Positions 4,722-63,489 of a stretch of 64,000 nucleotides of DNA are shown piece by piece. Position numbers and translations under genes: made by a program. The notes below the pieces were generated by a model. That model worked only from the letters and a program-made list of their open reading frames with translations. It was not told the DNA's origin and made no database searches. The first letter of the stretch is position 1, and each line of letters starts with the position of its first letter. Where the stretch lies: positions 124,001 to 188,000 of IMG/VR virus record IMGVR_UViG_3300036770_007539; one strand, written 5' to 3'.

Positions 4722-5369
4722 ATGGCTTTAAAACCTCTTAATCCAAAACATGAACCCTATGGCGTATTCGACGGACTTGATGCAGAAGTTACTGCTCTCA
4801 AAGGCGGCGAAGTTGTTGCTTTTACCTACGTCGCTAAAGGTAGCTCCGTAGACAAAGGCTCAGCCGATCTCAATGACGGCTACGTCTCTGATACCACTCA
4901 AACCCGTCCAGCAGTTACCAAAACTTTAGCATCTGGCGTTCGTCCCCTCTTCCTCGCTGATGAAGGCGTTTCCGGTTACGGTACACTCTTCGGCGTCGTC
5001 GTCGGCGGCACCTCAGGTCAACAAGTTTCAGGCTCTGCCCTCGGTCCTCACACCGCATACGCCTCTGGCAAAGTTACCCTCTGGGATGGTCCCGGTCTTT
5101 ATGCCGTTACCCTTGATGCAGTTGATACAACCGCAGCAACCGGCTTAACCAAAACCAACACCACCCTCGCTGGTAATGCAGCTCTCTACGCAACCTCAGC
5201 TGGTCTCTTAACCCCCAACTCCGCAGCTTCATTCGAAGTTGGTGGTCCAGTCGTCGGTCGCTTTATCGAATTTACCACCAATGGTTCATTCGTCACCACT
5301 CCATCAGATCTTGTAACCGGAGCAGTGAACTTCACTCAAGCAGTTCTCCGCTTCAAAGTAGAAGACTGA
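4722..5369 (+). CDS. Putative head decoration / capsid cement protein
   Basis: 215 aa, G/A/T/V-rich, immediately upstream of the MCP, with an AAGGA RBS and the same biased codon usage as the MCP. Confidence 0.65.
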   Translation: MALKPLNPKHEPYGVFDGLDAEVTALKGGEVVAFTYVAKGSSVDKGSADLNDGYVSDTTQTRPAVTKTLASGVRPLFLADEGVSGYGTLFGVVVGGTSGQQVSGSALGPHTAYASGKVTLWDGPGLYAVTLDAVDTTAATGLTKTNTTLAGNAALYATSAGLLTPNSAASFEVGGPVVGRFIEFTTNGSFVTTPSDLVTGAVNFTQAVLRFKVED

Positions 5370-5382
5370 TTTTGAAAAGATT

Positions 5383-5412
5383 TGAGGGGTGGCAGTCGCT
5401 GCCCCTCATTTG
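5383..5412 (+). terminator. GC-rich hairpin (weak terminator or processing stem) between decoration and MCP genes
   Basis: TGAGGGG...CCCCTCA inverted repeat followed by a short T run. Confidence 0.45.
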
Positions 5413-5475
5413 TCAAATAACAATAGAAATGCTTATCATTGTGATGAGCAGAATTAACTAAATAAGGATCCAATT

Positions 5476-8856: not shown

Positions 8857-8940
8857 TGAGCCGTAAATCGGCTGCTGATGAACCGTAATTTGGCACTAAC
8901 CTGCCGACGAACCTAAAATCACCTGCCGATGAACCGTAAA
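8849..8940 (+). repeat. Four degenerate direct repeats, consensus about CCTGCYGAYGARCC(G)TAAA; a fifth copy lies inside the MCP at 8739-8757
   Basis: GCYGAYGAR cores start at 8852, 8874, 8903 and 8925 (spacing 22, 29, 22 bp) and at 8743. Confidence 0.85.
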
Positions 8941-8969
8941 AGGGCGCTGGAGAAATCCGGCGTCCTTTT
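8938..8969. terminator. Bidirectional intrinsic terminator between the convergent MCP and methyltransferase genes
   Basis: AAAAGGGCGCTGGA-GAAA-TCCGGCGTCCTTTT hairpin flanked by A and T runs. Confidence 0.8.
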
Positions 8970-12564: not shown

Positions 12565-13077
12565 ATGTCAGCGGTATTCATAGATAATGTAACTGGAGAG
12601 TTAAAATATCAAGGACCTAATAGTACTCCTGCGGTATTATCGGATGGATATGGGGTAGTTCCATTAGTTCCGATGGTAATGCCTTATACATTATTAACTG
12701 GGGTACAGACAGCTGACAGCTCAGTATTTGCTGGATTAGGTGCTAGAGAATTGGATCCTAGTGTAATGTTTGCTGGTAATAGTAAAATAACACGTTCGGT
12801 AGAATTTCGAGTATTACTAGAGGCTACTACTGGGGTAACGGCAGAGGTCAGGCTATATAATTTGGATACGGGGTCTGCGGTTAGCGGATCGACATTAACG
12901 ACCAGCTCGAACAGTCCGGTATTATTGACGGCTGCATTAACTGTAGGAACTGCGCCTGATTTGGTGGATGCAACTCAAAATTATGAATTGCAGTTAAGGA
13001 TCTCGGCACCTGGGTCTCCTGGGGTTACGGATCGAGCAATTTGCAAGATGGCAGAAGTAGTATTTAATTATAGCTAA
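12565..13077 (+). CDS. Hypothetical virion protein (beta-rich)
   Basis: 170 aa, T/S/V/G-rich, AAGGA RBS, late-promoter-like motif upstream. Confidence 0.6.
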   Translation: MSAVFIDNVTGELKYQGPNSTPAVLSDGYGVVPLVPMVMPYTLLTGVQTADSSVFAGLGARELDPSVMFAGNSKITRSVEFRVLLEATTGVTAEVRLYNLDTGSAVSGSTLTTSSNSPVLLTAALTVGTAPDLVDATQNYELQLRISAPGSPGVTDRAICKMAEVVFNYS

Positions 13078-13115: not shown

Positions 13116-14078
13116 ATGGCAATAGTAGCATCTACCAATCAAACAATTTCTACTTGGACTCAGGGAATTTTTAATGTTAAAGAAACATTAAAACTAGCAG
13201 GCTGGCAAGTCTTATCATCTAGTGATGGCACCACATACAATAGCACTTCTGATATTATAACTAGTGCAAGTTCCGGCGCTAATGGTTTGGGAAACACTAA
13301 TGCTTGGTTTAGAATACAATCTCCTGATGGATATGCCGAATATGTTTTCCAAAAAGGAAATGATGCAGATAATAGAAATTGGAGAGTGGTATTTAGTGGA
13401 GACACTATTTCTGGTGGATTTATAGGTGGAACTCCTAATGCTTCAACAATTCCTACTGCTACGGATGGAGTTCCACTAAGAGACGCTAGCGTACAGTTAT
13501 TTTCACAAACAATTGGCACTGCGGCTCCGAGATTTCATGTGGTAGCAGATGATGCAGCGCCTTATACTTGGTGGTTTGGAAGCTGGCAAAGCACCACAGG
13601 AGCTTTGAGTAATCATGGTGGAATGATTCATGATGTTTGTACAGCGTTAACTCCAGGAGATCCTTCTGGATATATTGCTTATCTTTCAAGCTCTTCATTT
13701 ACTACTGTAACATACATAAATGGAACTGCTGTTGGTCCTGGTGGAAGTACGACCTGGCATTTAGTATGTAGAACTCAAAATAATACTGGATGGACCGTTC
13801 CAGAAGGTCATTCATTTTCTATAGGCTCTACAGGACATACTACTTATCTTAACAGCGTAGCTAATCCTTTAACTTTAAAGGATGAATTGCTTCCGGTAAT
13901 CTACACCATATCCAGCAATAATTCTACTAATTTTTCTTGGAAAGGTGTTGCTACTATGATGCGGTGGAAGTCCATATCTAGACCCGTAACATCCACATAT
14001 ACGGTTAATACTACTAGGGATAGAGTTATTTTTGATTCTATCTCATTGCCTTGGGACGGTTCAGTACCATTGGTGTAA
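13116..14078 (+). CDS. Hypothetical virion protein (fibre/appendage-like)
   Basis: 320 aa, T/S/G/W-rich; starts with an LKLAGWQVLSSSDG motif; promoter-like motif upstream. Confidence 0.6.
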   Translation: MAIVASTNQTISTWTQGIFNVKETLKLAGWQVLSSSDGTTYNSTSDIITSASSGANGLGNTNAWFRIQSPDGYAEYVFQKGNDADNRNWRVVFSGDTISGGFIGGTPNASTIPTATDGVPLRDASVQLFSQTIGTAAPRFHVVADDAAPYTWWFGSWQSTTGALSNHGGMIHDVCTALTPGDPSGYIAYLSSSSFTTVTYINGTAVGPGGSTTWHLVCRTQNNTGWTVPEGHSFSIGSTGHTTYLNSVANPLTLKDELLPVIYTISSNNSTNFSWKGVATMMRWKSISRPVTSTYTVNTTRDRVIFDSISLPWDGSVPLV

Positions 14079-16834: not shown

Positions 16835-16871
16835 CATCTTGTTATGATTGCCAATATTTTTGTATATTTTT

Positions 16872-17777
16872 ATGGCAACTTTAAAACCCCGCTCTCAAAT
16901 TATCCATCCTACCGAAGGGGTAAGTCTACGTGCGCAATTTTATGATTTAAATGGCGATCCGGTAGATCTAGTATCCGTTCCTCAAGTTGCAATCATTCAG
17001 CCAAGCGGAAACGTAGCCGTAGGACCAACTACAGTTGGAGTCTATCGTGTAGATACTGGTTTATATGGATTTGATTATACAACGGCATTGCAGACCAGCC
17101 AAGGAGTTTGGGTGGATTTATGGCGAGGTCAAATTCCATCGGGTCAAACTATTGTTAAAGAATTTAATTTTACAGTATTTTATACTCAAACACCATTAGC
17201 GAATAGCGATGGTTACTGGGCTTTAGGAGATGATGTACCATTTAATTATTCTCAAACTGCAATATTAAATATTAATAAATTATTAAAGGGATTAAAAGCC
17301 AGATTAAAATCCAGTGGAAAATCAGCTGGAGTAGATCAATTTAATAATCCAATTTATGTAGATTGTGATATTTATAGTACAGATCAGTTAGTTACATTTT
17401 TAGCAGAATCATTGAGTATGTTTAATCAAATTCCTCATTTTACAGCTTTTGAATTTCATCATACAGAAATTATTACAATATTTTATGATATTTTAGTTCA
17501 GGGTGCAACATTATTAGCCCTATCTAGCCAGGCTTTGATTGAAAGAGGAAGAGAATATAATCTCACAGACAATGGTGTTAGCTTGACCCCTCCAACAATT
17601 AGCGAATTGCTTAATACGCAATGGAGCACGGAGCTAACAAATCACATGGAAAAGTTGAAGATGATTAAGGCGTCAATGAAGCCAATCGCGTTGGGTTTGG
17701 GTACGCTAACAGGAAGCGTTGCCCGCGCTCCACAATTCGCCCGTCTCCGTTGGCTCAGAGCCCGTCAAATCTACTGA
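16872..17777 (+). CDS. Putative neck / head-tail adaptor protein with N-terminal Ig-like domain
   Basis: ATG at 16872; beta-rich N-terminus (TGLYGFDY, GVWVDLW) and helical C-terminus with YNLTDNGVSL, an adaptor-like pattern; located between head and tail genes. Confidence 0.55.
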   Translation: MATLKPRSQIIHPTEGVSLRAQFYDLNGDPVDLVSVPQVAIIQPSGNVAVGPTTVGVYRVDTGLYGFDYTTALQTSQGVWVDLWRGQIPSGQTIVKEFNFTVFYTQTPLANSDGYWALGDDVPFNYSQTAILNINKLLKGLKARLKSSGKSAGVDQFNNPIYVDCDIYSTDQLVTFLAESLSMFNQIPHFTAFEFHHTEIITIFYDILVQGATLLALSSQALIERGREYNLTDNGVSLTPPTISELLNTQWSTELTNHMEKLKMIKASMKPIALGLGTLTGSVARAPQFARLRWLRARQIY

Positions 17778-19574: not shown

Positions 19575-19619
19575 AATTTAATTAATTAATAACATATTAT
19601 TAATTTGGCATATTTATGT

Positions 19620-21218
19620 ATGGCTTGCGTTGAACCTACCCCTAAATATTTGCCACACAGTTTGGTCGGAATTCAGAAGGTATCATGTACTTCTGATGGT
19701 CAAGCCATTGTACTAGATTGGACTAGAGCCTATCCGGATCCATATAATTTTACACTTGGTTACAACATATACTACTCTACTATAAAAGAAGATGTATTTT
19801 CTGAGGGTCCAAAATATTTAGTTTTAAATAAAACAACTATTGAACTTTTAGATTTTACCCCTGGAGATAGTTATTATTTTGCAGTTCGCGCCACAGAGTT
19901 TGATCCTGAGGTGGTTCAGTTATCTGGATTGCCGGATCTTGGTGTAGCCAAGATTTATCCTGAGGCGCTCTTGCTGTCAAACATTACAGATACCGATAGC
20001 ATTTTATACATTAGCGACATAGATTTATTTCCTAATTACGGAGTTGTTCAAGTTGGGGGAGAGCTAATTAGTTATACAAATAAAGACATTCCATCCAGTG
20101 CTTTGACCGGATTAACTCGTGGATTTTTAAAAACAATAGCAAAACCTCATAGCACAGATGGATACGATGGAACTACAACTTGGGATCCATTTATTAAATT
20201 TTGGAAGGGTTTTGAAGATAAAAATTTAAAATACTTTCAAGAAGTAATTAATTTTGCTTATCCTAATTATGCTTATACCGCTCTTGATGGGTATAAGTAC
20301 AGCAAAGATATTGTTTATTCTAATTTAGAAAATGTAAATTCAAATGAGCAGGATTTTCCGAAGTATGATCTTGTTGGTTGGAGAAGAACAAATCCAAAAG
20401 ATTATTTAACCGGTAAATGTATTGGTTCTTACTTTGGTGGAGAAATATATTGTGCTGATGGATATGATGGGGTTGGAAGACAAATTAGAGGACCTTCTGT
20501 TAACGATGAAAACAATAGAAGGCAAGAATTATTATTAGAACAGACGGGAAAGTCTGTTGTTTTGCTTAGAAGGTATCATACTGGAATTCGTTGCAAATGT
20601 TTCTTGGCAGAAGTGGAACAGCCAGACGATCGTTGTCCCTATTGTTTTGGTACTGGATTTACAGTTGGATACGAACAGTTTTTTAATCCCAGGAGAAGTG
20701 ATGGGAGAATTTTAGTTAGAATAGACACAGCTGATGAAGATATTCCAGTTCAAGATGGTGGATTAGAAAATATATATGCTCCTAGTGGATGGACACTAGT
20801 TTACCCGGTAATTAAAGACCGTGATATTATTATTTTATATGATCCTTATGAAAAAGAAGTAGAAGAAGCAAGATATGAGATCATGAGTGTTACAAGAAAC
20901 GTTTTATTTTATGAATTGTATGGTGCTCAAAAATTTAAATTACAAAGAATTAGAAAGACTGATCCCTTGTATAAGATTAAAGTTTTTTCAGATTCATCTA
21001 TGATGCCATCTCAATTAACTACAAGTATCAATATGGGAGGAGTATTTTTACCTCATTCTCATACAGTAGTTGTGAGTGAGAAGATACTAAATATATCTCA
21101 AATTAATCAATTGACTAGTATTGGTGGATCGAATTCTACACAGCATCATACTCATCAAATTGTTAATGGAATAATTCAACCAGCAGCTGATGGTCATACA
21201 CATACCATCATGTTATGA
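19620..21218 (+). CDS. Putative head-closure/neck protein: FN3-like domain, zinc finger and His-rich C-terminus
   Basis: LDW..AY...GYNIYY...YYFAVRA (FN3); CKC..CPYCFGTG; RYEIMSV; HSH/HHTH/HTH tail. Confidence 0.55.
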   Translation: MACVEPTPKYLPHSLVGIQKVSCTSDGQAIVLDWTRAYPDPYNFTLGYNIYYSTIKEDVFSEGPKYLVLNKTTIELLDFTPGDSYYFAVRATEFDPEVVQLSGLPDLGVAKIYPEALLLSNITDTDSILYISDIDLFPNYGVVQVGGELISYTNKDIPSSALTGLTRGFLKTIAKPHSTDGYDGTTTWDPFIKFWKGFEDKNLKYFQEVINFAYPNYAYTALDGYKYSKDIVYSNLENVNSNEQDFPKYDLVGWRRTNPKDYLTGKCIGSYFGGEIYCADGYDGVGRQIRGPSVNDENNRRQELLLEQTGKSVVLLRRYHTGIRCKCFLAEVEQPDDRCPYCFGTGFTVGYEQFFNPRRSDGRILVRIDTADEDIPVQDGGLENIYAPSGWTLVYPVIKDRDIIILYDPYEKEVEEARYEIMSVTRNVLFYELYGAQKFKLQRIRKTDPLYKIKVFSDSSMMPSQLTTSINMGGVFLPHSHTVVVSEKILNISQINQLTSIGGSNSTQHHTHQIVNGIIQPAADGHTHTIML

Positions 21219-38321: not shown

Positions 38322-39134
38322 ATGTCACTTTCTGATGCGCTTGGAGATGTAAAAGATGCAAGAGGGGCAGTTAATGATTCTTTTGGATCTGCTGCAGGTT
38401 ATTTAAATGAAGGGCTAGAGTTTTTTAGCGGATCTGCAACTCCATCCACTTTAGGTTATGGAACCAGGCAATCTAAATTACAAAATAATCGTGCCGCTGT
38501 AAGTACTAGACAAATTATTCACTGGGCAGTTCCTGAGGGACCAGTAATTCAAATGTATGTTAATCCTCAGACTATTACTTATAATTATGGAAAAGATATT
38601 TCTCCTCAAAGAACTAGAGGCGGATATGTTGTTCAATATTTTGGTCCTAAGCTAACAACGCTAAGAATCGGTGGAACAACTGGAAGCTCTGGAATTGAAG
38701 GAATTAATGTTTTGTATGATTTATATCGTTATGAGCAATTAGCATTCGATCCTTATGCTCTATATCTGGCAGCAGAAGCCTATGAGAACATTCAAAGTGA
38801 ATTTAATCCTAGTCTTGCTAGTACTTTATTTGGAGATGCAGGAAGCGTTACTACTAACGTAAACCCGCCTTCTTTAGCCGACATGGCATTTAGAGTAGAA
38901 ATGTTTTACGCTGGAGAAGTTTATCGTGGGTTCTTTACAGAATTTACAGTAAATGAGAAGGCTGACAACATAGGTTTATTTGATTATGACATGAGCTTTA
39001 CCGTAACGCAGAAACGTGGATTCAGACAAAACTTTTTTGCCTGGCATCGCTCTGCAGTTGATGGTCCAAGCAATAGTAATCCCAGATATGGCGCTCCTTA
39101 TAGTTATAGTTCTCTAATAGAGGTTCCAAGGTAA
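38322..39134 (+). CDS. Putative tail tube initiator / baseplate hub-proximal protein
   Basis: MYVNPQTI.Y...K.....TRGG and YRGFFTEFTV.E....FDY.MSFTV tube-like pattern. Confidence 0.65.
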   Translation: MSLSDALGDVKDARGAVNDSFGSAAGYLNEGLEFFSGSATPSTLGYGTRQSKLQNNRAAVSTRQIIHWAVPEGPVIQMYVNPQTITYNYGKDISPQRTRGGYVVQYFGPKLTTLRIGGTTGSSGIEGINVLYDLYRYEQLAFDPYALYLAAEAYENIQSEFNPSLASTLFGDAGSVTTNVNPPSLADMAFRVEMFYAGEVYRGFFTEFTVNEKADNIGLFDYDMSFTVTQKRGFRQNFFAWHRSAVDGPSNSNPRYGAPYSYSSLIEVPR

Positions 39135-53867: not shown

Positions 53868-56800
53868 ATGGCAGTATTAAAAGCTTTAGAAGTTAAAGTT
53901 TTAAGTAGCACAAAGATTCAGGCTAAATTTAATTTAGAGCTTGATCCTTTGATTAATACATCTAATATATCTATCAGATCCAACGTATTTAATATTCCAG
54001 ACCCTGCTGTCTTGGAGGTCAAGGTTAGTAAAGATAAATTAACTATTTTAACTCAGCCTTTATTTCCTTACACTCAATATTTTGTAACTTTCAAGTCTTC
54101 AGATTTATTATTGTTTAAATCTATCAATGGCGTTTCCCTAGTGGAAGATGGAAAATTAAATGTATTTTTAATTTTAGGTGCGGAAGACCCTAGCAATCCT
54201 TTTAGAGATTATTTCTTATATGAATTAAAAGATGATCCATATAATTTAGATTATGGCACAATAGTTAGAGATATAATAAATGTTAACTCAGACTTTTTAG
54301 CTAATGCTCTTTATGATATACGAGAGCTTAAAAATGATAACTATTTAAGCAGAACTATTTTTAATGAATTAAAAACTAGGGGAGCTGGACCCGTAGACCG
54401 CTTATCCGAAGGCGGAGCATATGAGATAATTAAAGTTTCTAAAAATGCCGAAGGAAGATTAATAAATGATTCTATTAATTTTGAAGAGTTTCCTTCTTAT
54501 CCAATAACCTTGCAAAGAAAGGTTGTTTCATCAGAAAAGTTAACTCCCGGAAGTGGCACTTCTACAGTTAACGGTTTGTTGTTAAACTTAAAAAATAAAC
54601 CAATAACTGCAGTCAAATCTATTATTATTCAATATAGTAACTCTGGAAAATACATTTATAATATTTCTTCTTTGGGGTATCAAATACAGGATAATCGATA
54701 TGACCCTGATTACGCTTCTTCTTATCAATTATTAGAAGAAAACCAGGTATTATTATCTTCTTTAGTGCTAGAGGATGATAATTTTTTCACCCCTGTAGCC
54801 GGAGATATTGTTTATGTCTCTTATGAATATAAAGATTTGGGCAGAATTGTCAGCGAGGATTCGATAGAAGTTTATAAAATTTTAGAAATTAATAGAGAGG
54901 TCGTACCTCCAATCTTAAATTCCTTTTCGCTTCCTCATTATCCAATAGTAGATGAAGTTGGAAATATTCCAACATTTAATGGAATAGAATTTTTAGATCC
55001 TCTTTCCAATCCTCCTTTTTCTCAAACTCATCCTGCATTTATTAAAGAAATACCTTACAAGCTGGAAGGTCTTCCCAAAGCTGTTGGGGAGTATTCTGTT
55101 GATTATTCTACTGGATCTATTTATGTTTATGGAGCTGAAAAAAATGATGGAACTGGAGATTTTCCACCGGTAGTATCATACTTATATAAAAATTTATTTG
55201 TTAAAGAGTTAGATTATAATTATGATGAAGACACATATGAAGTTGTAAGATCTCCTTTGAGATTTTTAGAAGGCGATTCCGCTAAAATAAGTTTCTCTTA
55301 TGAGAAGACTTTAATTCCATATATTGATTTTATACCTAAAGTTCATACTGAAGTTTTAAATGAAAGAATTGAAAATAAATTTCTTTCCAATAACTCTTTT
55401 ATTGTCAACAATGCCCCAGTGACAAATGTTTTTAGAATATATAATGAAACTTCTGGGGAGGTTTATTCAGTTGATAGGTTTTCCTTTAATAAGGTATATT
55501 TTTCATCTAGAATATCTCCACAAGTTAATACAATCATTAAAGAACGAGCAGAATTTTCAAAAGTTGAAAATGAACTACTTCTTGTAAATGAAGAGCTAAC
55601 TAACTTATCTTCAGTTAAAATTTTTAAAATTAATTTACAAAATAATAAGATAATATCTTCTACTGAAGATTCTATAGGCTCTTCTTTTAATAGTTCTGTC
55701 TTTTTTAGTAGGACTGATATTTTCTCTACTGAATTGTATTATGATTACGTTAGTTTGACCGAAGGAAGTAATATTAATAAATTGTCTGTTGGTCAATATC
55801 TAATTAATTATCAAGATGGCATAGTATATGTTGGAGTTGATAATAATCAAGTTTATGATGTGGGAACAATTTCATATAAAAAACCATACATAAAGACTCA
55901 ATTTAGTCATATTATTGCTGTTAATAACTTATATAATAGCATTCTGCCAAATAAAATTTATAAAAATATTAAATATAATTCTTTCTCTGATTCTGAAATT
56001 TTACCATCAACTTTTGAAGTTTCAGATGAAAGATTTTTAAATCAAAGCACACTAAATCCATATATTGTATCTTCAAATACAATTACTGTAACTGATGATA
56101 TTAGTTATGTTAGGGGCGTGTACGATTTATATGATTTGAATAATAATATTGATGTTGTTAATTTTTCTGAAAATTATTCTTCTTCATCCAATGTTATAAC
56201 TTTGACTCCAATACAGAGAATAGTTTCTAGCCAGATATCTGCTGGATTAATTGTTTCATTACCATATGTTTCTCCGGGAGTAGAAATATACGAGGTTAAA
56301 TCTATAATTAGAAAATCTGACAATGTAGAATTATATGATACCGGTGCAATAATTTCTGGTTATGATATTATTTTATCAGGGGTTAATTCTCCTGTAACTG
56401 GAGAAGAAGTTACAGTTTATTATAGCATAAGAATGAATGGCTCTGCTACCCCAGTCGTTGATTATGCAAGGGGCGATCTTTTTCTTGATTATGAATATGT
56501 TGCAGATGAAGTCCTTGTAAGTTATGAGCATGGGGATAATTGTTTAGATTTTTCTCAAAGTAATTCTATTGATGAAGGCGAAGAATATTATGTTACTTAC
56601 AAGGTTGGAGCATTAAGAAATGCACTATTTAAAAACTTTGGTTCATTAGTAAATATTCCAATTTTAAATAGTTTCGATACTTCATTAGAAAGAGAAAGAT
56701 ACAGAGATGCATTGAGGGGAGCCTTGCAATCCTTTGCTAAAGGTCCAACTTTACCTTCTATGAAGTCTTTAGTTGAATTTATCACTCATATTCCGCCTGA

Positions 56801-59800
56801 AATTGTTGAAGCCGCTTTCGATAATTGGAACTTAAACATTGGTCATTTATACAATAATCAAATTGAAACAACTGGCAATCTTTTGCTTAGCCCTGGAAAA
56901 TTTGACAATGGTGTTTTAATTGAAAACGCCGATGAAACAATATCATTCCCAGTGTCTAACAATCTAAAATTAGAAGAAGGTACTTTAGAAATGTGGGTTG
57001 TTCCTAAGTGGAACGGCTTAGACAATGATGCTACACTAACCTTTCAAGTTCTAAAAGATGGATATGTATTGCCGAGCGATCATATTTTTATTGGAGCCGC
57101 AGGAAATCATCCAACGTTAGATCTTAATAATAAATTTTCTGTCATTAAAAATGATAATTCAATAGGCTTGCCAACAGCAATCTACACCAATATTGGCGCT
57201 TTTATTTTTTATGATGAAGACCAGTTCCGTTGGAAATTCTTAGTAAGAGATAAGATAAGTGACGGATATTCTTATCATGGAACAATAGAAACTTCTGGAA
57301 GTTTTTATCATGTTAATTTTATTGATGGTCTAGGCGAGTTGACAGATAAATTAAAAACAAAAAATTCTATTATTGAATTTACTTTCAATATAGATTCTCA
57401 GGACGAGTTATATCCAGACGGCTACGTTGATGGCTATGCAGATGGATATGTAGATGGTTATGATGGATATTCTGATGGATATTATCCTTTAGATGGATAC
57501 GTGCCAGGTTATTCCTTTGACGGTATAAGATTCATGTCCGATAACGAACATTATTTATTTGATTTTGGTAATGAGTCTTATAAAAATAGATTCTCTTTAT
57601 TTAAAGATGGCTCTGGTTATTTAACTTTTAGAGTATACGATAATGGATCATTTGATAGAATTAACAAATATACAGTCAGTGCCGACATTTCAAATTGGAG
57701 AGCTGGAGAATCTCACCACGTTGCTATTTCTTGGAAGTTGGCAACAAAAGATAAAAAAGATGAGATGCATTTATTTATTGATGGCATAGAGATTCCAAAC
57801 ATCATTAAGTATGGCGGCAGACCAATTTCTACATTAACAGATCGGTTTAGGACGGTAGTTCCAGAATATGTACTAGGAACTATTACTCAAAAGATAATTA
57901 CATTTAATGATTTAAATACTGATGGAAGTAATCTTGTATATTCCGACAGTATTAATTTTACTTCAGAAGGAATTGTTCCAGGGGACATTTTAGAAATTAA
58001 AGAATTGGGATTGGGTGCTTATACCATATCTTCCGTTTCTGGTAATTACTTGACTTTAACAAGTGCGGTTCCTTCAGTGCTAAGCAATGCACGATTCACA
58101 ATAAATCCATATTCTATTATTGTATCTTCGGAAATTGATCTTTATAAGAACTTTACAGTTTCGCTTTTCAGTGGTTCTTCCGAAGAAGAACTACCCGGAC
58201 TAAGAGCTGATATTCCAGGCTATGAGATTAGTAAAAACTTTTTAAATCAAAATATTTTAACTATTTTGGGAAATGCCAATGTTGGAGATCAGGTTGTTAT
58301 TAGGACATTAGGGTTGAATTTCCGAAGAGCCAGAGAAAGAGTTTATGTTTGGGGCAACAATTTAAATATATTAAGAACACAGCTGCCATCACCAATCAAT
58401 TTAGACGAAGTAAAAATATACCCAGTCATTTTGCCAAAGGTAGCTATTGGACCAAGTAATTCTACCTATTCTTTAGGTTTGTTTAATTTTACTACGTCAG
58501 ATATTTCTCAAACTTCTTCTCCTTTAGAAGGAAGAACTTTGGCAATAAAAGTATTTTCTGGAAATGTTGATTTTTCAACTCCAGTTACGGTAGTTATTAA
58601 TGGCACAACCAACTCTACACCTAATGAAACTTTAACCTTTAGTTCAGCAGGGACACAATACACAACTAAAAAATTTACCAACATTACATCTGTGGATGTA
58701 ATTGCTAAGCCGTTTAATCCGCTAAAAAATTCGGCAATTGTTGAAATTAAAGAAAAGTATACTATTACTTATTCCGAAGGAAATTCTGTTTTTCCAGTTA
58801 TTAGGTATTCTTACAAAACTCAAACTGGAAGTACTTTATCTGGAAATTCTGGCTCTTCTATTGTGGAAGATTTAAATGGATATTTTGTTTTTTCAAATAT
58901 AGATCAGTCCTTAGTTATCTCTTCACCTATAAGTGTGGCTGGCACTTATCAAATTGTCAATAAGCTTTCCGATAAAAGCATAGAAGTTTTCCCTGCCCTT
59001 CCTGCAAGTTTTTCTAATGGAATCTATGATATTTTTAATACATCTATTAGCCGCTCAGGTTTTGCTAATGGATTTTTTACATTAGAGACTGCTGGTCAGG
59101 TAAATGTTCCATTTAATTTAAATAACGGATATTATGATTTTGATTATTCTGTTAATTTAGAAATTCCTTTTGATCCATTAACAAATGATAAAATGTATAT
59201 TGGATCTAGTATTCATGGTGATTGTCAGGCGTCTTCTATTATTGATGAATTGAGAATTTTATCTACAATGTTAACCGATGTCAGAATAGGCGAGACTTTA
59301 ATATCTGGAACTGAAAGTGTAACTATAGACGCTGCTAAGATTAGACCATTTAGAAAAAATAGTGACACATTAACTTTGATTCACTTCGATGATAAACCAT
59401 TTAATAATGATTCAGATTTTTGGATTTCATCTAACAAAGAATATATTCAATCAACATCTAGTGTTAACAGTGATTTCGGAAAGTCTTTATTAATTAAAGA
59501 TAGACCTTTAATTTATGATAATTTAGGATATCTATCAACATCTTCTCAGGGTACAATTGAATTTTGGGTTTCTCCAATGTTTGATACTGGAAACGACCCA
59601 GAGTATAGGTTTTATTTTGATGCCGCCGCATTGACCACGGAAGATTTGATTTCTACTTCTAAGGCAAGCATTATATTGAATAATAGAGCGTCTTCTATTA
59701 GTTCTATTTATGTAGAAGGTGATAAGAAGAACTATGCAGCTCAAGCTGTAATACAATCAGATTTTAAAACAGTAAAATTGAGCATTCCATTGCCATATCA

Positions 59801-60545
59801 AAAAACTCCTGTAAAAGTAACATATACTCAAGTGGGAGTTCTTGGAGATAGAATATCTATTTATAAAGATTCAGAGAGCTATATTAATTTAACTGTTAAA
59901 GCTTCTGGTAAAGAGTATCAAGTTAGACAACCTGTCTTATGGACTAAAAACTCTTGGCATAGAATTAAAGCTACATTTAAATTTAATCAGCCCAATAATA
60001 ATGATGAGATTGGATTGTTTGTGGACGGTGAAGAAAGAGGAACAGTCAGATTTGGAAATGGTTTGCTTTTTGGAACAGGAGCTGTTTATGGTCAGGGATT
60101 TGCCGGTGTAGATAATTCTACGCTAACTGCCGACATTAATTTCTTGGATGTTATTAGTAAATTTTACATAGGCTCTGACATTAATTCCGTTAATTTAGCC
60201 AAAGCCAGAATAGATAATTTTAAAATTTCTAATATTGTTCAGCCGTTCTATATGATCGCGGGTCAATCTAAAGACGTAAACTATAATTCCAATATAGATA
60301 CTGTATTTCCCGTTGTAGAAGATGCTTATACGACATTTTTATTAAATTTTAATGCTTTATTTAGTATAAATACAGAGTGGGCAACTCTAAGAGATAAATA
60401 CTTTGGAATTTATAATTTTACAATTAAAATAATAGATTCTTTTGATATAGTTTCTGAAAGCGAAAAAGTAAAGCAAATATTAGAGACTTTAATCAATATT
60501 CTTAAGCCCGCTCAATCTAAGGTAACATTAGAATACTTAGACTAG
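53868..60545 (+). CDS. Very large baseplate wedge protein with LamG/concanavalin-like domains
   Basis: 2225 aa; YRDAL...KGPT..SM; EGTLEMWV.P.W, HHVAISW..LFIDG, IDELRI, WHRI...LFVDG; ends LKPAQSKV. Confidence 0.7.
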   Translation: MAVLKALEVKVLSSTKIQAKFNLELDPLINTSNISIRSNVFNIPDPAVLEVKVSKDKLTILTQPLFPYTQYFVTFKSSDLLLFKSINGVSLVEDGKLNVFLILGAEDPSNPFRDYFLYELKDDPYNLDYGTIVRDIINVNSDFLANALYDIRELKNDNYLSRTIFNELKTRGAGPVDRLSEGGAYEIIKVSKNAEGRLINDSINFEEFPSYPITLQRKVVSSEKLTPGSGTSTVNGLLLNLKNKPITAVKSIIIQYSNSGKYIYNISSLGYQIQDNRYDPDYASSYQLLEENQVLLSSLVLEDDNFFTPVAGDIVYVSYEYKDLGRIVSEDSIEVYKILEINREVVPPILNSFSLPHYPIVDEVGNIPTFNGIEFLDPLSNPPFSQTHPAFIKEIPYKLEGLPKAVGEYSVDYSTGSIYVYGAEKNDGTGDFPPVVSYLYKNLFVKELDYNYDEDTYEVVRSPLRFLEGDSAKISFSYEKTLIPYIDFIPKVHTEVLNERIENKFLSNNSFIVNNAPVTNVFRIYNETSGEVYSVDRFSFNKVYFSSRISPQVNTIIKERAEFSKVENELLLVNEELTNLSSVKIFKINLQNNKIISSTEDSIGSSFNSSVFFSRTDIFSTELYYDYVSLTEGSNINKLSVGQYLINYQDGIVYVGVDNNQVYDVGTISYKKPYIKTQFSHIIAVNNLYNSILPNKIYKNIKYNSFSDSEILPSTFEVSDERFLNQSTLNPYIVSSNTITVTDDISYVRGVYDLYDLNNNIDVVNFSENYSSSSNVITLTPIQRIVSSQISAGLIVSLPYVSPGVEIYEVKSIIRKSDNVELYDTGAIISGYDIILSGVNSPVTGEEVTVYYSIRMNGSATPVVDYARGDLFLDYEYVADEVLVSYEHGDNCLDFSQSNSIDEGEEYYVTYKVGALRNALFKNFGSLVNIPILNSFDTSLERERYRDALRGALQSFAKGPTLPSMKSLVEFITHIPPEIVEAAFDNWNLNIGHLYNNQIETTGNLLLSPGKFDNGVLIENADETISFPVSNNLKLEEGTLEMWVVPKWNGLDNDATLTFQVLKDGYVLPSDHIFIGAAGNHPTLDLNNKFSVIKNDNSIGLPTAIYTNIGAFIFYDEDQFRWKFLVRDKISDGYSYHGTIETSGSFYHVNFIDGLGELTDKLKTKNSIIEFTFNIDSQDELYPDGYVDGYADGYVDGYDGYSDGYYPLDGYVPGYSFDGIRFMSDNEHYLFDFGNESYKNRFSLFKDGSGYLTFRVYDNGSFDRINKYTVSADISNWRAGESHHVAISWKLATKDKKDEMHLFIDGIEIPNIIKYGGRPISTLTDRFRTVVPEYVLGTITQKIITFNDLNTDGSNLVYSDSINFTSEGIVPGDILEIKELGLGAYTISSVSGNYLTLTSAVPSVLSNARFTINPYSIIVSSEIDLYKNFTVSLFSGSSEEELPGLRADIPGYEISKNFLNQNILTILGNANVGDQVVIRTLGLNFRRARERVYVWGNNLNILRTQLPSPINLDEVKIYPVILPKVAIGPSNSTYSLGLFNFTTSDISQTSSPLEGRTLAIKVFSGNVDFSTPVTVVINGTTNSTPNETLTFSSAGTQYTTKKFTNITSVDVIAKPFNPLKNSAIVEIKEKYTITYSEGNSVFPVIRYSYKTQTGSTLSGNSGSSIVEDLNGYFVFSNIDQSLVISSPISVAGTYQIVNKLSDKSIEVFPALPASFSNGIYDIFNTSISRSGFANGFFTLETAGQVNVPFNLNNGYYDFDYSVNLEIPFDPLTNDKMYIGSSIHGDCQASSIIDELRILSTMLTDVRIGETLISGTESVTIDAAKIRPFRKNSDTLTLIHFDDKPFNNDSDFWISSNKEYIQSTSSVNSDFGKSLLIKDRPLIYDNLGYLSTSSQGTIEFWVSPMFDTGNDPEYRFYFDAAALTTEDLISTSKASIILNNRASSISSIYVEGDKKNYAAQAVIQSDFKTVKLSIPLPYQKTPVKVTYTQVGVLGDRISIYKDSESYINLTVKASGKEYQVRQPVLWTKNSWHRIKATFKFNQPNNNDEIGLFVDGEERGTVRFGNGLLFGTGAVYGQGFAGVDNSTLTADINFLDVISKFYIGSDINSVNLAKARIDNFKISNIVQPFYMIAGQSKDVNYNSNIDTVFPVVEDAYTTFLLNFNALFSINTEWATLRDKYFGIYNFTIKIIDSFDIVSESEKVKQILETLINILKPAQSKVTLEYLD
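57417..57500 (+). repeat. Tandem coding repeat of seven DGY units
   Basis: DGYVDGYADGYVDGYDGYSDGYYPLDGY, encoded with varied synonymous codons. Confidence 0.9.
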
Positions 60546-60567
60546 ACTACTTTTCCGATATAAAAAC

Positions 60568-63489
60568 ATGACAAAAAGAATAGAAGTTTCCGGATTGCAA
60601 AATTTATTTAGGGACGCTCAGCGTGTATCTAAAGAAGACTTGGACACAGAGCAAAACTATAATAATAAAATTCAATCATCAATTATAAACAATCATCTTG
60701 GCTCTGGAATATTATTAGAAAATCCAGAACAAGTTATTATTTTTGATTCTGATTCTTTAACTTCTGTTCAAGCAGGTCTGTTAGCCGCTGGTAATTTTGA
60801 TGGAACAGGCTTGTCGCCCCACTCTCAGCCATCGGATATTAATCTTGGAAATCAATTAGAAATATCTTTAACGGATTCTTCCGTTGTTGGCAGATTTTCT
60901 GCTAAGGTAGCTATAATAGGGTTGTCTTTTGATGGAGAATTGCAGATTGATAGATTTTATTTTTATAAAAACGAATCTCAAGTTACTGCAAATCATTATA
61001 AAAGAGTTCTTGCTATTTTAACAAATGATTTTAAAGGTAATAATAATTGTTCAAGAAATTTGGGCGGCAGATTAGTCATTAAAGAAGCAAAGTCTTTTCA
61101 AATATCGAGAGATCCTATTATGATTTCTCAGGACGTAGAGCCTGATATTTTTTGGAGAGATTTTAAAATAGCCAATTCCACTTCTAGCTTACAAGCTACA
61201 TTGCAAGCCGCCATTGGACCTGAATATAATGTTGATTCTTTAAATATAAATACTACTGGCAGACCTAATAGAGAATTGACTATTGGAGACGTATCATCTC
61301 ATGTTGGTCAAAAATTTATTGCAAAAACTGATAATATTCAAAAAATTACTTTATTAATGGGAGCTTCTCGCGATGACTCAGCTCCAGAAGTCAATAGATA
61401 TGATTGGTCTGGCTCTTTAGTTGTAAGTATTTATGCCTTGCAAACTTCTGTTTCTTGCCCAACAGATATAATTCCATCTTTGGCAATTGATTTTGATCCT
61501 CAAGCAGAACCATTGGTTCAATTTGCTTTTAATCAATCAGATCTTAAGGATAATGGATATGTATTAACCGATGTTTTGCAGCCCGTGGATATTGTCTTTT
61601 CATCTTCTAAAATAGGCGCATCTAGATCTTTAAATATAAATAATTATTACGCTTTTACAATTAAAAGAACAGGAGATGCTTCGGTTGGAAACATTCAATT
61701 TGGCTCAGGCAATAATCGCACTGATGACTCTAAGTTAACTTTATATAGTGGCGGATCTTGGGTAGATGTTGTAGAAGAAGATTTATGGTATCAAGTTTGG
61801 ACCGATGCACTTAAAATATCAGATGGTCAAGGGTATGACTCTGGTCAAGGAGTTTTTTATCCTAAAACAATTATAGATTCTTCTACTGGAGCTACAATTG
61901 ATAATAAAAAGCAAAATTTTTCATTTAACGACACAGGATTTAATATTCCAAATATTGGAATTTTACAAGCAGTTACAGAGTCTAGTGTAATTGAACAAGA
62001 TGAAAGAACGGGCAATGATACTTTTTCAAGAAAGCAGTTTATTCCCAGCTTTAGTTTAATTTCTAATACTGAATTAACGGATCTTCAAGTTACAACAGAT
62101 CCTTTGGTGGTTGGAGCTGCTAAAGATGTCAACCCTAAAAAAAATCCAGTTTTGCTTAAAAACCAAAGTGTAATTGGTCTTGCTAAATCAAATATATTTT
62201 GTATTTTGAATCCAGACCCAGATTTAATTACCAATAATTTGGTTGGATCTGTTTTAACTCCTAACCTTTTGTCTAGTAGTAAATTTAAAATTGTTAAAGT
62301 TGATTTATGTACAGATGGGTATGGCGATGTAAATGGCGACGGTCAGATCGATTTGTCAGATGTTACTCTTGCGTCTTCTTTAATTGGCGAAAGTATATAT
62401 TATCCTGTTACTCAGCAAAAAATTGTTGATGGATACATTAATACATTTGATCTGTTAAGGGCGGACGTGGATGGTGACGGATATATCACTACTAATGATA
62501 TTGATTTACTAACTCAATACGTAAATAAATCAATTAATTCATTTCCTGCAGGCACATCATTTAATCATCTATGCCTTGAGCTTCAGCCATTAGTTGGGAG
62601 ATACGATGGATACTTTGACTGCGGAGATGGATATGTAAGGGTAGATGGCTCCTCTTCTAATATAATTTCATCTAGTTTACTTAGTGAGTATGAGCTTTTA
62701 TATGATGGATATTACATTCCATCTAATCTGGAATTAGATCCTGTATTTTCTACCGTTCCATTTGCAGGAGTTAATTATCAAATTGCTCCTAAGCCATTTT
62801 GGCAAGATTGGCAAATAAACTTATCTTCTGATGCAAGACTAGTTCCGGCAGCGTTTACATATCTTGAAAGTTCGGAAACTTTTTCTTGTACTGAGACTGT
62901 TGATACGGTGTGCGATTCTCAATATCAAGAAGCTCCAACAATAGACACTGGAAGAAATGACTTTTTTATTCCAAATAATTTATTAATTGGTAATGGTCAA
63001 ATTTTGAATGTTGATGGGTCGCATTTTAAACAAGACTTTGAAATTGCAACTATTGAGCTTAGACTTCCAGAAATTCCTTTAAATGAATCAAAAATTAATA
63101 TTTTTGAAAAATTTGTAGTGGACGTAGGCAGTGGTAAAACAGCTTCTGGATATCCGGCTATGAAATATTCTGATTGCTCAACAGTTCAAATAGAAGATTT
63201 GTTTTTAAATAAAGTTAAATTCAATGTTGCAGTTCAAGCCTTCTATAAAAACTTGGATGGATATGACGCAGATTTAGATGGGTATGTTGTCATTGAAGAT
63301 CCTACGATTGGCGTCCTAATAGATCATTCTACTGGCATTCTTACTTTAAATGCCAGCGATCTTGCCGAAGATACGGTCTTCAAATCATTAGTAACAAAGA
63401 TTTCAGTAACAGTATACTTAAAGAAGGCAGGGTGGAATAATAGACATCTTATTGTGACTTCGAATGAGATACAGGGATTACTCTCATAA
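60568..63489 (+). CDS. Virion/baseplate-associated protein with a dockerin-like paired Ca-binding motif
   Basis: 973 aa; YGDVNGDGQIDLSDV and RADVDGDGYITTNDI; eight DGY motifs in the C-terminal half. Confidence 0.65.
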   Translation: MTKRIEVSGLQNLFRDAQRVSKEDLDTEQNYNNKIQSSIINNHLGSGILLENPEQVIIFDSDSLTSVQAGLLAAGNFDGTGLSPHSQPSDINLGNQLEISLTDSSVVGRFSAKVAIIGLSFDGELQIDRFYFYKNESQVTANHYKRVLAILTNDFKGNNNCSRNLGGRLVIKEAKSFQISRDPIMISQDVEPDIFWRDFKIANSTSSLQATLQAAIGPEYNVDSLNINTTGRPNRELTIGDVSSHVGQKFIAKTDNIQKITLLMGASRDDSAPEVNRYDWSGSLVVSIYALQTSVSCPTDIIPSLAIDFDPQAEPLVQFAFNQSDLKDNGYVLTDVLQPVDIVFSSSKIGASRSLNINNYYAFTIKRTGDASVGNIQFGSGNNRTDDSKLTLYSGGSWVDVVEEDLWYQVWTDALKISDGQGYDSGQGVFYPKTIIDSSTGATIDNKKQNFSFNDTGFNIPNIGILQAVTESSVIEQDERTGNDTFSRKQFIPSFSLISNTELTDLQVTTDPLVVGAAKDVNPKKNPVLLKNQSVIGLAKSNIFCILNPDPDLITNNLVGSVLTPNLLSSSKFKIVKVDLCTDGYGDVNGDGQIDLSDVTLASSLIGESIYYPVTQQKIVDGYINTFDLLRADVDGDGYITTNDIDLLTQYVNKSINSFPAGTSFNHLCLELQPLVGRYDGYFDCGDGYVRVDGSSSNIISSSLLSEYELLYDGYYIPSNLELDPVFSTVPFAGVNYQIAPKPFWQDWQINLSSDARLVPAAFTYLESSETFSCTETVDTVCDSQYQEAPTIDTGRNDFFIPNNLLIGNGQILNVDGSHFKQDFEIATIELRLPEIPLNESKINIFEKFVVDVGSGKTASGYPAMKYSDCSTVQIEDLFLNKVKFNVAVQAFYKNLDGYDADLDGYVVIEDPTIGVLIDHSTGILTLNASDLAEDTVFKSLVTKISVTVYLKKAGWNNRHLIVTSNEIQGLLS

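Follow-up and report, generated by a model that had tools for sequence, protein, structure and literature searches.

A DGY tripeptide concentrated in the outer virion proteins of a family of uncultured jumbo phages, and its possible role as a protein-modification tag

We have found that a large family of uncultured jumbo phages packs the tripeptide Asp-Gly-Tyr (DGY) into its outer tail, neck and fibre proteins, on loops or hairpin tips in the structures modelled, and largely keeps it out of inner tail proteins and enzymes. Seven outer protein groups, among them the sheath insertion domain, the tail terminator and two fibre proteins, carry 721 DGY against 48.9 expected, while the tube, tape measure and other inner tail proteins carry 3 against 17.0, and sugar enzymes plus tubulin carry 2 against 15.6. 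This pattern, next to a conserved sugar-transferase gene cluster, looks like a new protein-modification tag, although it has not been shown chemically.

Enrichment of DGY in the window and across the family

The sequence analyzed, referred to here as the window, is a 64,000-nt stretch (positions 124,001 to 188,000) of IMG/VR record IMGVR_UViG_3300036770_007539, which lies in a 301-kb jumbo myovirus contig. An earlier note, made from the sequence alone, had counted about 35 DGY by eye in 13 unrelated predicted virion proteins. Translation of the 40 long ORFs (19,915 aa) gives exactly 35 DGY in 13 proteins, with the same count per ORF; the observation in the note is correct and much stronger than could be seen from the letters alone. 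The note reported no DGY in the major capsid protein, but our searches did not identify which ORF encodes that protein. Comparison with shuffled proteins and with DGF, EGY and NGY controls had been put forward in the note as a way of testing the excess. The expectation from the composition of each protein is 3.4, and 2000 per-protein shuffles gave a mean of 3.46, a standard deviation of 1.87 and a maximum of 11. DGY ranks first of all 8000 tripeptides (Poisson P = 1.4e-23), and the next best, LTP, reaches only 6e-6. Observed and expected counts for the controls are 8/4.0 for DGF, 6/3.9 for NGY, 0/2.8 for EGY, 0/0.6 for DGW, 7/3.4 for GYD and 3/3.4 for YGD. A first-order (dipeptide) model raises the DGY expectation to 8.1. 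Two fibre genes hold 17 of the 35 copies, one run alone holding seven, but without these two genes the count is still 18 against 2.64 (P = 5e-10), and 13 proteins carry the motif against 3.0 expected. At the DNA level, GAYGGNTAY occurs 35 times in frame 0, never in frames 1 and 2, and twice on the minus strand, with mixed codon use, so the signal is at the peptide level. The contexts are unrelated between proteins, only two marginal local similarities having been found, and no extended consensus appears in 322 non-redundant contexts. The unit is the tripeptide itself.

About 80 related, divergent genomes (sheath identity 39-100%) show the same excess of 5-20x. The note had named an equal frequency of the motif in unrelated phages as grounds for rejecting its idea. 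As background, 80 random AT-rich viral loci (155 kaa) give 42/25.4, or 1.65x, and their proteins of 600 aa or more give 8/6.5. The T4 structural region gives 9/2.56, a 3.5x excess without any such system, and SPO1 gives 2/3.08. Non-redundant DGY:DGF sites are 258:38 in outer proteins and 2:31 in inner ones, against 39:18 in random viruses (Fisher P = 3e-9). The hydroxyl-bearing residue is therefore what is gained or shunned, although the Phe preference of inner proteins could partly reflect burial. The depletion counts pool orthologs and are not phylogenetically independent, and for genes after the tubulin gene the depletion is mild, with 15 DGY against 23.4 expected and 14:16 non-redundant DGY:DGF sites (P = 0.065).

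Distribution, conservation and modelled location of DGY sites

All features described below lie on the plus strand. The two DGY-richest proteins are encoded by the fibre genes. Fibre/baseplate-distal protein TF1 (53868..60545; 2225 aa) contains nine DGY (aa 1064, 1132 and 1184-1209) and a ConA-like lectin domain at aa 1995-2090; its ortholog group carries 56 DGY against 4.4 expected, and 35 against 3.0 in a second sample. Seven of its sites form a run at 57417..57500 with variable spacers of 0-3 residues (DGYVDGYADGYVDGYDGYSDGYYPLDGY). Orthologs keep DGY in this run but vary in copy number and spacers, and at the DNA level it is only a degenerate 12/24-nt repeat with 72-78% matches. Fibre protein TF2 (60568..63489; 973 aa) contains eight DGY (aa 583-904) and a dockerin type I domain at aa 585-653, and its group carries 196 DGY against 8.9 expected, with only 8 DGF. 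The dockerin, whose Pfam hit covers aa 585-653 only, is an ordinary calcium-loop domain, and only about 2 of the 35 sites (TF2 aa 637 and 904) fit a DxDxDG loop of the EF-hand/dockerin type, in which DG is preceded by D/N at positions -2 and -4 and followed by a hydrophobic residue and an acidic ligand; the motif as a whole does not match such loops. Some outer-looking fibre proteins have no DGY, such as the 1205-aa proteins in the loci L028 and L032.

The tail sheath (31954..34386; 810 aa) has DGY at aa 175 and 182 (nt 32476-32484 and 32497-32505), and a third site at aa 199 is DSF here but DGY in relatives. The protein has the fold of a contractile-tail sheath, with a Pfam Phage_sheath_1C hit and Foldseek matches of the model to phi812, T4, A-1(L) and pyocin sheaths with E values down to 2e-15. 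Its group carries 178 DGY against 11.1 expected. Sheaths hold about three DGY at different columns in different clades, all in the first 455 residues, although one sheath clade has none in the sheath. The tail terminator/neck gateway-like protein (31052..31843; 263 aa) carries DGYGN at aa 122-126 (nt 31415-31429), its predicted fold matches neck and terminator proteins, and its group carries 55 DGY against 3.7 expected. Sites are conserved far above background. In the sheath at 50-70% identity, DGY is kept in 55% of pairs, other D/N-G-x triplets in 28% and all other triplets in 21%; in the terminator, DGY is kept in 86% of pairs at 30-50% identity, against 1-9%. Mapping of the motifs on predicted structures for surface-loop exposure was among the checks proposed in the note, and AF2 models were used to examine it: in the sheath model (pLDDT 82.8) the sites lie in loops of a beta-rich insertion domain, and the terminator site lies at the tip of a long beta hairpin.

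Two large virion proteins carry four DGY (25672..30921; 1749 aa; aa 272, 370, 612 and 813) and two DGY (21584..25144; 1186 aa; aa 76 and 200), with group totals of 206 against 16.7 expected and 17 against 3.4, respectively. A virion structural protein with a weak fn3 hit (19605..21218; 537 aa) carries three (aa 185, 228 and 285; group 13 against 0.6). Single copies occur in a connector-like protein (16848..17777; 309 aa; aa 121), where DGY is kept in three close relatives, and in two baseplate-region proteins, 44124..46151 (675 aa; aa 440; group 4 against 0.86) and 46174..48315 (713 aa; aa 644; group 9 against 0.66). The remaining single copies are in an ORF of 215 aa (4722..5369; aa 52) that lies just upstream of a group I intron and may be an exon, an ORF of 170 aa (12565..13077; aa 27) whose DGY is kept in the relative L296, and an ORF of 320 aa (13116..14078; aa 71).

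In contrast, the putative tail tube (34423..35055), assigned from its position after the sheath and a virion-structural PHROG hit, is DGY-free, and its group carries 0 DGY against 1.9 expected despite 150 DG and 13 DGF. The group of the putative tape measure (39136..44109; 1657 aa), assigned from size and gene order, carries 0 DGY in 66,547 aa against 9.1 expected (5.5 by the dipeptide model), with 34 DGF. A protein with a weak tube-initiator hit (38322..39134) is also DGY-free, and its group carries 0 against 2.8 expected, with 14 DGF.

The adjacent glycosyltransferase cluster

The note had also pointed to a GT4-like gene after the most DGY-rich genes. This gene does follow, as 63511..64000 encodes the first 163 aa of a 364-aa GT4-family glycosyltransferase, but it is only the first gene of a sugar cluster of about 17 kb and 18 genes that continues beyond the window. 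GT4, three GT2, a GT2+GT6 fusion, GT11, pyruvyl transferases, methyltransferases and three NDP-sugar epimerase/dehydratases start 21 nt after TF2 on the same strand. None of the cluster proteins has a convincing membrane span: the one pyruvyl-transferase window above the threshold lies inside a soluble fold, and the cluster protein u191 is marginal (1.62 against 1.6). No flippase, polymerase or oligosaccharyltransferase was found among the cluster genes, which fits direct transfer to a soluble acceptor. The order TF1-TF2-GT4-GT2-...-epimerase-tubulin is kept in every relative whose locus reaches that region. Co-occurrence of DGY enrichment with glycosyltransferase genes had been suggested in the note as a test, but the comparison does not discriminate, because every relative sampled across that region has the cluster and the sequence of the one DGY-free lineage (L018) was not extended to it, leaving no informative motif-free control; any family-specific gene could be responsible. 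No enzyme in the cluster has a known protein acceptor, matches being to generic polysaccharide, LPS and teichoic-acid transferases, and no enzyme was assigned to the motif. The cluster could instead modify DNA or a host surface polymer.

Interpretation and comparison with known systems

The note inferred that DGY is a short tag that marks outer virion proteins for an enzyme or for a decoration partner. This interpretation is partly supported, in that DGY behaves as a selected three-residue unit rather than as part of a shared domain, is confined to outer virion proteins apart from the few copies counted above, needs Tyr rather than Phe, is purged from inner tail proteins and neighboring enzymes, and is followed by a soluble glycosyltransferase cluster, whereas the docking alternative has no specific support. 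We tentatively favor, at somewhat less than even odds, the hypothesis that DGY is a surface tag placed on exposed loops, hairpin tips and linker runs of the sheath outer domain, neck terminator, baseplate periphery and fibres, where it is most likely the acceptor motif for covalent modification of the tyrosine hydroxyl by a phage enzyme in the cytoplasm before or during assembly. The best candidate chemistry is stepwise O-glycosylation by the soluble glycosyltransferase, sugar-nucleotide, pyruvyl-transferase and methyltransferase genes that directly follow the fibre genes, and the result would be a glycan coat on the tail and fibres. Our analysis demonstrates the enrichment and its peptide-level nature, its limitation to outer proteins and depletion elsewhere, the preference for Tyr over Phe, the conservation with turnover, the loop location and the gene neighborhood; that an enzyme reads the motif, that Tyr is what is modified, that the modification is a sugar and that the neighboring genes attach it are inferences, and no glycan mass was measured, as the phage is uncultured and proteomic data were lacking. 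In its boldest form, which is possible but less likely than not, DGY would be the acceptor sequon of a previously unknown cytoplasmic protein tyrosine O-glycosylation pathway encoded by a widespread family of 200-480 kb jumbo phages, coating the sheath, neck, baseplate and fibres with a complex (fucosylated, pyruvylated, methylated) glycan and having reshaped the phage proteome, the motif multiplying on outer loops and being purged from inner tail proteins and the phage's own enzymes.

If DGY is a modification tag, it would be the first sequon described for a phage particle and the first consensus for Tyr-linked protein glycosylation, readable directly from sequence in hundreds of uncultured jumbo phages. 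It would predict a glycan-cloaked contractile tail, with consequences for host recognition, sticking to polysaccharide matrices and resistance to proteases or grazers, and would supply a compact tripeptide-plus-enzyme system that could be tested for site-directed protein glyco-tagging. Even if the chemistry is different, enrichment on the outside and purging on the inside is a rare, clean example of a short linear motif shaping viral protein evolution, and gives a sequence-only way to tell outer from inner virion proteins in this family.

Other explanations are considered less likely. DGY could be a non-covalent patch whose exposed Asp and Tyr bind a host capsule or exopolysaccharide, mucus-like glycans, a metal ion or a decoration or docking partner on the particle, many weak copies making the tail and fibres sticky, with the sugar cluster unrelated and serving, for example, host surface or DNA modification. 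The restriction to outer proteins, the peak in fibres that also carry lectin-like and dockerin domains, the multi-copy fibre runs and the loop location agree with this unlikely reading, and the Tyr hydroxyl and Asp carboxylate are typical ligand contacts. However, a three-residue patch in unrelated folds with no flanking consensus is a poor binding site, the sheath and neck terminator are odd places for receptor contacts, few sites fit a calcium loop, and depletion in cytoplasmic enzymes and inner tail proteins is not predicted. It is also unlikely that DGY marks Tyr for a covalent chemistry not involving the sugar cluster, such as phosphorylation, sulfation, nucleotidylation, oxidation to DOPA or Tyr-based cross-links that harden or glue the particle. 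The preference for Tyr over Phe, the outer-inner contrast and the purging from enzymes apply equally, and nothing in the data specifies the group that is attached, but no kinase, sulfotransferase, tyrosinase or peroxidase was seen in the 84 kb examined, most of the 301-kb genome lying outside that stretch, and the sugar cluster is the only conserved enzyme set at the structural module.

A further unlikely reading is that DGY is a lineage-specific structural idiom, an Asp-Gly tight turn followed by a Tyr whose hydroxyl staples the hairpin, inherited and reused in beta-rich outer domains with no reader enzyme or ligand. In its favor, DGY arises at positions that are D/N-G-x turns in other clades (DGV, DGE, NGT, DAN), the modelled sites are hairpin or loop turns, and random viruses and T4 show a mild excess. 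Against it, beta-rich inner proteins use DG often (the tube sequences above) but never DGY, the excess is 12-22x rather than 1.5-3x, runs such as DGYVDGYADGYVDGYDGYSDGY with variable spacers are not hairpins, the count is held while positions move, and the tyrosine-corner consensus (LxPGxY) does not match. A by-product of composition, DNA-level constraints, repeats or shared domains is already contradicted by the shuffles, the count without the fibre genes, the absence of out-of-frame copies, the mixed codons, the unrelated contexts and the recurrence across the family.

Phage virion glycosylation is established in mycobacteriophages (Freeman et al. 2023, cited in PMC12619734), where phage-encoded soluble glycosyltransferases likewise lie beside the structural genes, modification is presumed to occur in the cytoplasm and surface proteins of the particle are the targets. 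Here the adjacent arrangement is present, with at least six transferase genes after TF2. There, glycans sit on C-terminal extensions of the capsid and tail-tube subunits, but here the tube has no motif, the candidate capsid gene is unidentified and the sites are internal loops of the sheath, terminator, baseplate and fibre proteins. The candidate acceptor is Tyr in a fixed tripeptide spread over at least 12 protein families, and the gene set is much larger, with fucosyl-, pyruvyl- and methyl-transferases and three sugar-nucleotide enzymes. Tyr O-glycosylation is chemically established in the S-layers of Paenibacillus and Thermoanaerobacter, where complex, deoxyhexose-rich glycans are O-linked to Tyr on a repetitive surface array (PMC2943079). 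That system builds the glycan on a lipid carrier and transfers it outside the membrane with a membrane oligosaccharyltransferase, a machinery not found in the phage cluster, and the review describes no acceptor consensus. Whether Tyr is the linkage residue here is addressed only indirectly by the DGY:DGF contrast, which leaves the matter undecided.

Short glycosylation sequons, such as D-(S/T)-(A/I/L/V/M/T) of Bacteroidota and D/E-x-N-x-S/T of Campylobacter, are 3-5 residue motifs beginning with an acidic residue that mark many unrelated proteins on exposed loops for one machinery. DGY shares the feature of a short motif in many unrelated proteins on exposed loops, but it matches none of these sequons or N-x-S/T, as no Ser, Thr or Asn is required; those enzymes are cellular and act in the periplasm, and no sequon is known for Tyr. 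Chlorovirus PBCV-1 also carries its own soluble glycan-building enzymes and uses atypical acceptor sites, but it is a eukaryotic virus with N-linked glycans on the major capsid protein, and the similarity of B736L (PDB 3oy2) to the GT4 here is marginal (E = 0.21). Maturation-protease motifs (T4 L/I-x-E, phiKZ S/A/G-x-E) are likewise three-residue motifs that recur across unrelated virion proteins and are read by one phage enzyme, but they lie in head and internal proteins, usually one per protein near a terminus, and are removed or cut once. DGY sites lie in the sheath, terminator and fibres, up to nine per protein and in tandem runs, so cutting there would shred the proteins.

Enrichment of the Asp-Gly-Tyr tripeptide in the window

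In order to count Asp-Gly-Tyr (DGY), the 40 long ORFs of the window were translated, yielding 19,915 aa. DGY occurs exactly 35 times in 13 proteins, so the observation in the earlier note, which had given about 35 copies in 13 predicted virion proteins, is correct, including its per-gene numbers. The note had proposed comparison with shuffled proteins and with the variants DGF, EGY and NGY. The expectation from each protein's own composition is 3.4, and 2000 per-protein shuffles gave a mean of 3.46 and a maximum of 11, while a dipeptide-aware expectation is 8.1. Among all tripeptides DGY ranks first by a wide margin (Poisson P 1.4e-23), with the next, LTP, reaching 6e-6. Close variants are not enriched in the same way, with DGF at 8 against 4.0 expected, NGY at 6 against 3.9, EGY at 0 against 2.8, GYD at 7 against 3.4 and YGD at 3 against 3.4. 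Excluding the two fibre genes, which hold 17 copies, still leaves 18 against 2.64 (P 5e-10), and 13 proteins carry the motif where three would be expected.

A DNA-level cause, such as a restriction or methylation site or a skewed oligomer, was rejected. The pattern GAYGGNTAY occurs 35 times in the coding frame, never in the other two frames of the plus strand and twice on the minus strand, and codons are mixed, and the signal is therefore in the peptide rather than the DNA. A shared domain or recent repeats were likewise rejected, since windows of about 80 residues around the sites are unrelated between proteins apart from two marginal local similarities, and the run of DGY in the fibre gene TF1 is only a degenerate repeat at the DNA level. 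A calcium-loop explanation fits only about 2 sites, and a protease-site explanation is incompatible with tandem runs and with the sheath and fibre location.

The window (bases 124,001-188,000 of the 301,007-bp contig IMG/VR UViG_3300036770_007539) is a myovirus module. ORF 31954 is a tail sheath by Pfam and by predicted fold, ORF 31052 has the predicted fold of neck/tail-terminator proteins, ORF 50636 is baseplate-J-like, ORF 50061 is a sheath initiator, ORF 53868 (the fibre protein TF1) carries a ConA-like lectin domain and ORF 60568 (the fibre protein TF2) carries a type I dockerin domain (aa 585-653 of window 60568-63489; Pfam E 3e-8), for which no cohesin partner was sought. Cultured phages are only remotely similar, with the SPO1-type sheath C-terminus being 27% identical. 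The major capsid gene was not identified by Pfam, PHROGs, PDB sequence or tblastn searches against phages with ORFs 80-5369, 11100-14453 and others, leaving without confirmation the note's statement that the capsid protein lacks DGY. Promoter and terminator scans were uninformative, apart from the absence of a terminator-like hairpin between TF2 and the GT4 gene that follows it and a hairpin before the tubulin gene.

The note had named an equal frequency in unrelated phage structural proteins as a result that would count against it. In 80 random AT-rich viral loci (155,296 aa), DGY is found 42 times against 25.4 expected (1.65x), and 8 times against 6.5 in proteins of 600 aa or more. The SPO1 structural region gives 2 against 3.08. 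Phage T4 (75-125 kb) gives 9 against 2.56, a 3.5x excess that is spread over the sheath, gp7, gp8, gp12, gp27, gp28, SegD, SegE and UvsW, and derives partly from homing endonucleases and UvsW; it is higher than the random-virus baseline and is unexplained. A mild excess is thus common, but nothing near 10x.

Distribution, conservation and gene neighbourhood of DGY in the phage family

Searches anchored on the sheath, the first glycosyltransferase, the tubulin and baseplate J retrieved about 200 loci from contigs of up to 480 kb. Around the sheath, about 80 genomes with 39-100% sheath identity show a 4-22x DGY excess, with the exception of L018 and three other low-count loci. The latter three (L264, L272 and L286) simply cover DGY-poor genes or belong to a clade whose sheath lacks DGY while its neighbouring genes are rich, and no replacement motif is enriched in the low-count loci. 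The only truly motif-free relative is the long-branch locus L018 (IMGVR_UViG_3300033069_001735, 493-9520; sheath 44% identical), whose sheath, terminator and two large upstream proteins have 0 DGY against 0.84 expected, where relatives have 7-14. Searches with the L018 sheath found no longer contig, so that the presence of GT4 in this lineage was not examined. At the terminator hairpin tip L018 has DVHTGQ instead of DGYGN.

The note had also called for a split between structural and non-structural genes, and grouping unique sequences by ortholog gave two sharply different classes. The enriched groups (DGY observed against expected) are those of ORF 19605 (13 against 0.6), ORF 21584 (17 against 3.4), ORF 25672 (206 against 16.7), the terminator (55 against 3.7), the sheath (178 against 11.1), TF1 (56 against 4.4), TF2 (196 against 8.9), the baseplate ORFs 46174 (9 against 0.66) and 44124 (4 against 0.86), and baseplate J (5 against 1.09). 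The empty or depleted groups are the putative tube (0 against 1.9), ORF 38322 (0 against 2.8), the putative tape measure (0 against 9.1 in 66,547 aa), GT4 (0 against 2.4), a 269-aa transferase-like protein (0 against 2.0), the epimerase (1 against 3.5) and the tubulin (0 against 3.5). Pooled, the outer groups carry 721 against 48.9, the inner tail proteins 3 against 17.0, and the sugar enzymes plus tubulin 2 against 15.6, while genes after the tubulin gene carry 15 against 23.4.

The inner proteins do use Asp-Gly (150 in tube sequences, 269 in tape measures) and Asp-Gly-Phe (69 against 30.5), but not Asp-Gly-Tyr. Orthologous sites were collapsed to non-redundant contexts in order to compare DGY with DGF, and the DGY:DGF ratio was 39:18 in random viruses, 14:16 in genes after the tubulin, 2:7 in the sugar cluster and tubulin, 2:31 in inner tail proteins (Fisher P 3e-9 against random) and 258:38 in outer proteins. 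What is gained outside and shunned inside is the residue with the hydroxyl. Part of the inner-protein bias could reflect burial, and the pooled counts are not phylogenetically independent. We therefore treat the depletion as strong for inner tail proteins and for the sugar cluster plus tubulin, and as suggestive for the genes after the tubulin gene.

At equal divergence, DGY triplets are kept far more often than other triplets. In sheath pairs at 50-70% identity, 55% of DGY are kept, compared to 28% of other D/N-G-x triplets and 21% of all other triplets; in the ORF 25672 group at 30-50% identity the figures are 30%, 8% and 6%, and in the terminator at 30-50% identity they are 86%, about 1% and about 9%. 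Over longer distances the sites move. Most sheaths hold three DGY, but at different alignment columns in different clades, corresponding to positions near 67, 147, 175, 182, 199, 404 and 455 of the window's sheath. All lie in the first 455 residues and none in the conserved C-terminal core, and they usually sit where other clades have DGV, DGE, NGT, DAN, DSY or DAY. Where a conserved sheath DGY is lost in close relatives it becomes DSF, both in the window (32548-32556; sheath aa 199-201) and independently at another site in the sheath of the relative L005, with Gly and Tyr changing together. In TF1 the run DGYVDGYADGYVDGYDGYSDGYYPLDGY is replaced in relatives by runs with other copy numbers and spacers. 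In 322 non-redundant contexts there is no extended consensus, although Gly at +1 and aromatic residues at -2 are mildly favoured and Lys, Arg and Glu are mildly depleted. The selected unit is the tripeptide.

Structural models were used to place the sites, as the note had suggested. The sheath model (pLDDT 82.8) places DGY175 and DGY182, and the lost third site at 199, in loops between strands of a confidently modelled beta-rich insertion domain at about aa 130-260. Minimal sheaths in the PDB align only to about 320-335 columns, that is, to the core. Insertion domains of sheaths face outward, although exposure was not computed here. In the terminator model (pLDDT 71.9), DGYGN forms the tip of a long beta hairpin.

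Twenty-one bases after ORF 60568, on the same strand, begins a run of about 17 kb and 18 genes (1299-18456 of locus L021, which continues the contig beyond the window), followed by a TubZ/PhuZ-like tubulin (L021 18479-19798; contig 204,691-206,010) and a UvsW helicase. The run contains a GT4, three GT2, an 896-aa GT2+GT6 fusion, a GT11 (fucosyltransferase family), two pyruvyl-transferase-like proteins, methyltransferases, several proteins of unknown function and three NDP-sugar epimerase/dehydratases. None of these proteins has a convincing membrane span, and no flippase, polymerase, initiating phosphotransferase or oligosaccharyltransferase family was hit in the run. The order TF1-TF2-GT4-GT2-...-269-aa protein-epimerase-tubulin is kept in every relative sampled across that region. 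Comparison with the relatives' loci L027-L032 and L157-L219 shows a conserved core of about 5 genes (GT4, GT2, one or two unknowns, the 269-aa GT2-like protein and an epimerase) that is expanded to about 18 genes (GT11, the GT2+GT6 fusion, pyruvyl transferases, methyltransferases and two more epimerase/dehydratases) in this phage and a few others, suggesting lineage-specific glycan structures. The 269-aa protein gave no PDB sequence hit, and its consensus motifs look GT2-like by inspection, without a formal test. The tubulin, which directly follows the sugar cluster across the family (41-100% identity, contigs of 200-480 kb), was the most convenient family marker.

Candidate functions of DGY and comparison with known systems

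A short motif that is multiplied on loops of outer proteins, conserved as a unit, renewed at new positions, dependent on the Tyr hydroxyl, and purged from inner virion proteins and nearby enzymes behaves like something read by a catalyst with costly off-target effects. In this view a bulky adduct would be harmless or useful on the outside, whereas inside the sheath-tube interface or the tube lumen it would be harmful. The only conserved enzyme set at the structural module is a soluble glycan-building cluster, which fits stepwise transfer to a soluble acceptor. Tyr-directed modification, most likely O-glycosylation, is therefore ranked first, although only tentatively. The analysis itself establishes that the pattern is real, highly non-random, family-wide and structured in a way that implies function, but that an enzyme reads DGY, that Tyr is what is modified, that the group is a sugar and that these genes are responsible are all inferences, and there is no chemical evidence. 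The note's interpretation, in which DGY marks outer virion proteins for an enzyme or a decoration partner, is supported in part, with the sequon hypothesis being the best available but unproven.

Several alternatives were weighed against this reading. A non-covalent binding or adhesion patch is considered unlikely but is the strongest rival, followed by another Tyr chemistry and then by a lineage-specific turn idiom, both of which are regarded as more doubtful still, while an artefact is all but excluded. The transferases resemble ordinary polysaccharide enzymes and could serve DNA or host-surface modification. Co-occurrence of DGY enrichment with glycosyltransferase genes, a test put forward in the note, does not discriminate, as every relative sampled across that region has the cluster and the sole motif-free lineage could not be extended.

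In the favoured reading, the system works most like phage virion glycosylation in mycobacteriophages and like sequon-directed general glycosylation, and it borrows its presumed linkage from S-layer Tyr O-glycosylation (PMC2943079). It is not a member of the S-layer pathway, because it has no membrane machinery; it does not use any known sequon; and it does not target capsid or tube tails as mycobacteriophages do. Literature searches for a DGY or Asp-Gly-Tyr motif, or for Tyr glycosylation, in phages found nothing relevant. A recently described aquatic jumbo-phage lineage, the 'moraphages' (200-307 kb, four core glycosyltransferase groups), may overlap this family, and whether the two are equivalent was not established.

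Group I intron, homing endonuclease and other genes of the module

A group I intron at window 5690-5938 (+) matches Rfam RF00028 (75 bits, full length) and is followed by two paralogous LAGLIDADG endonuclease ORFs (6200-6991 and 7698-8501; 41% identical). GC rises to 0.39 with negative GC skew over 4-8 kb. ORF 4722-5369, which carries one DGY, may be an exon of a split gene, possibly the unidentified capsid gene. The only long minus-strand ORF (8969-10981; 670 aa) combines HTH domains, a LAGLIDADG-like domain and a fragment of an N6/N4 DNA methylase, and its homolog in the relative L296 is shorter by 129 N-terminal residues.

A class-V aminotransferase/cysteine-desulfurase-like gene (IscS-like; window 14471-15571, +) is embedded in the head-neck module and is conserved in close relatives (87-96%). 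A single scan of genome contigs with this gene, performed in order to identify a host, found no close cellular homolog. A GIY-YIG/NUMOD3 homing endonuclease (window 17750-18751, +) sits between structural genes; it is present in L296 and absent at the same place in the relative L294. Copies also occur next to the tubulin gene in other family members, so this endonuclease appears to be mobile within the family.
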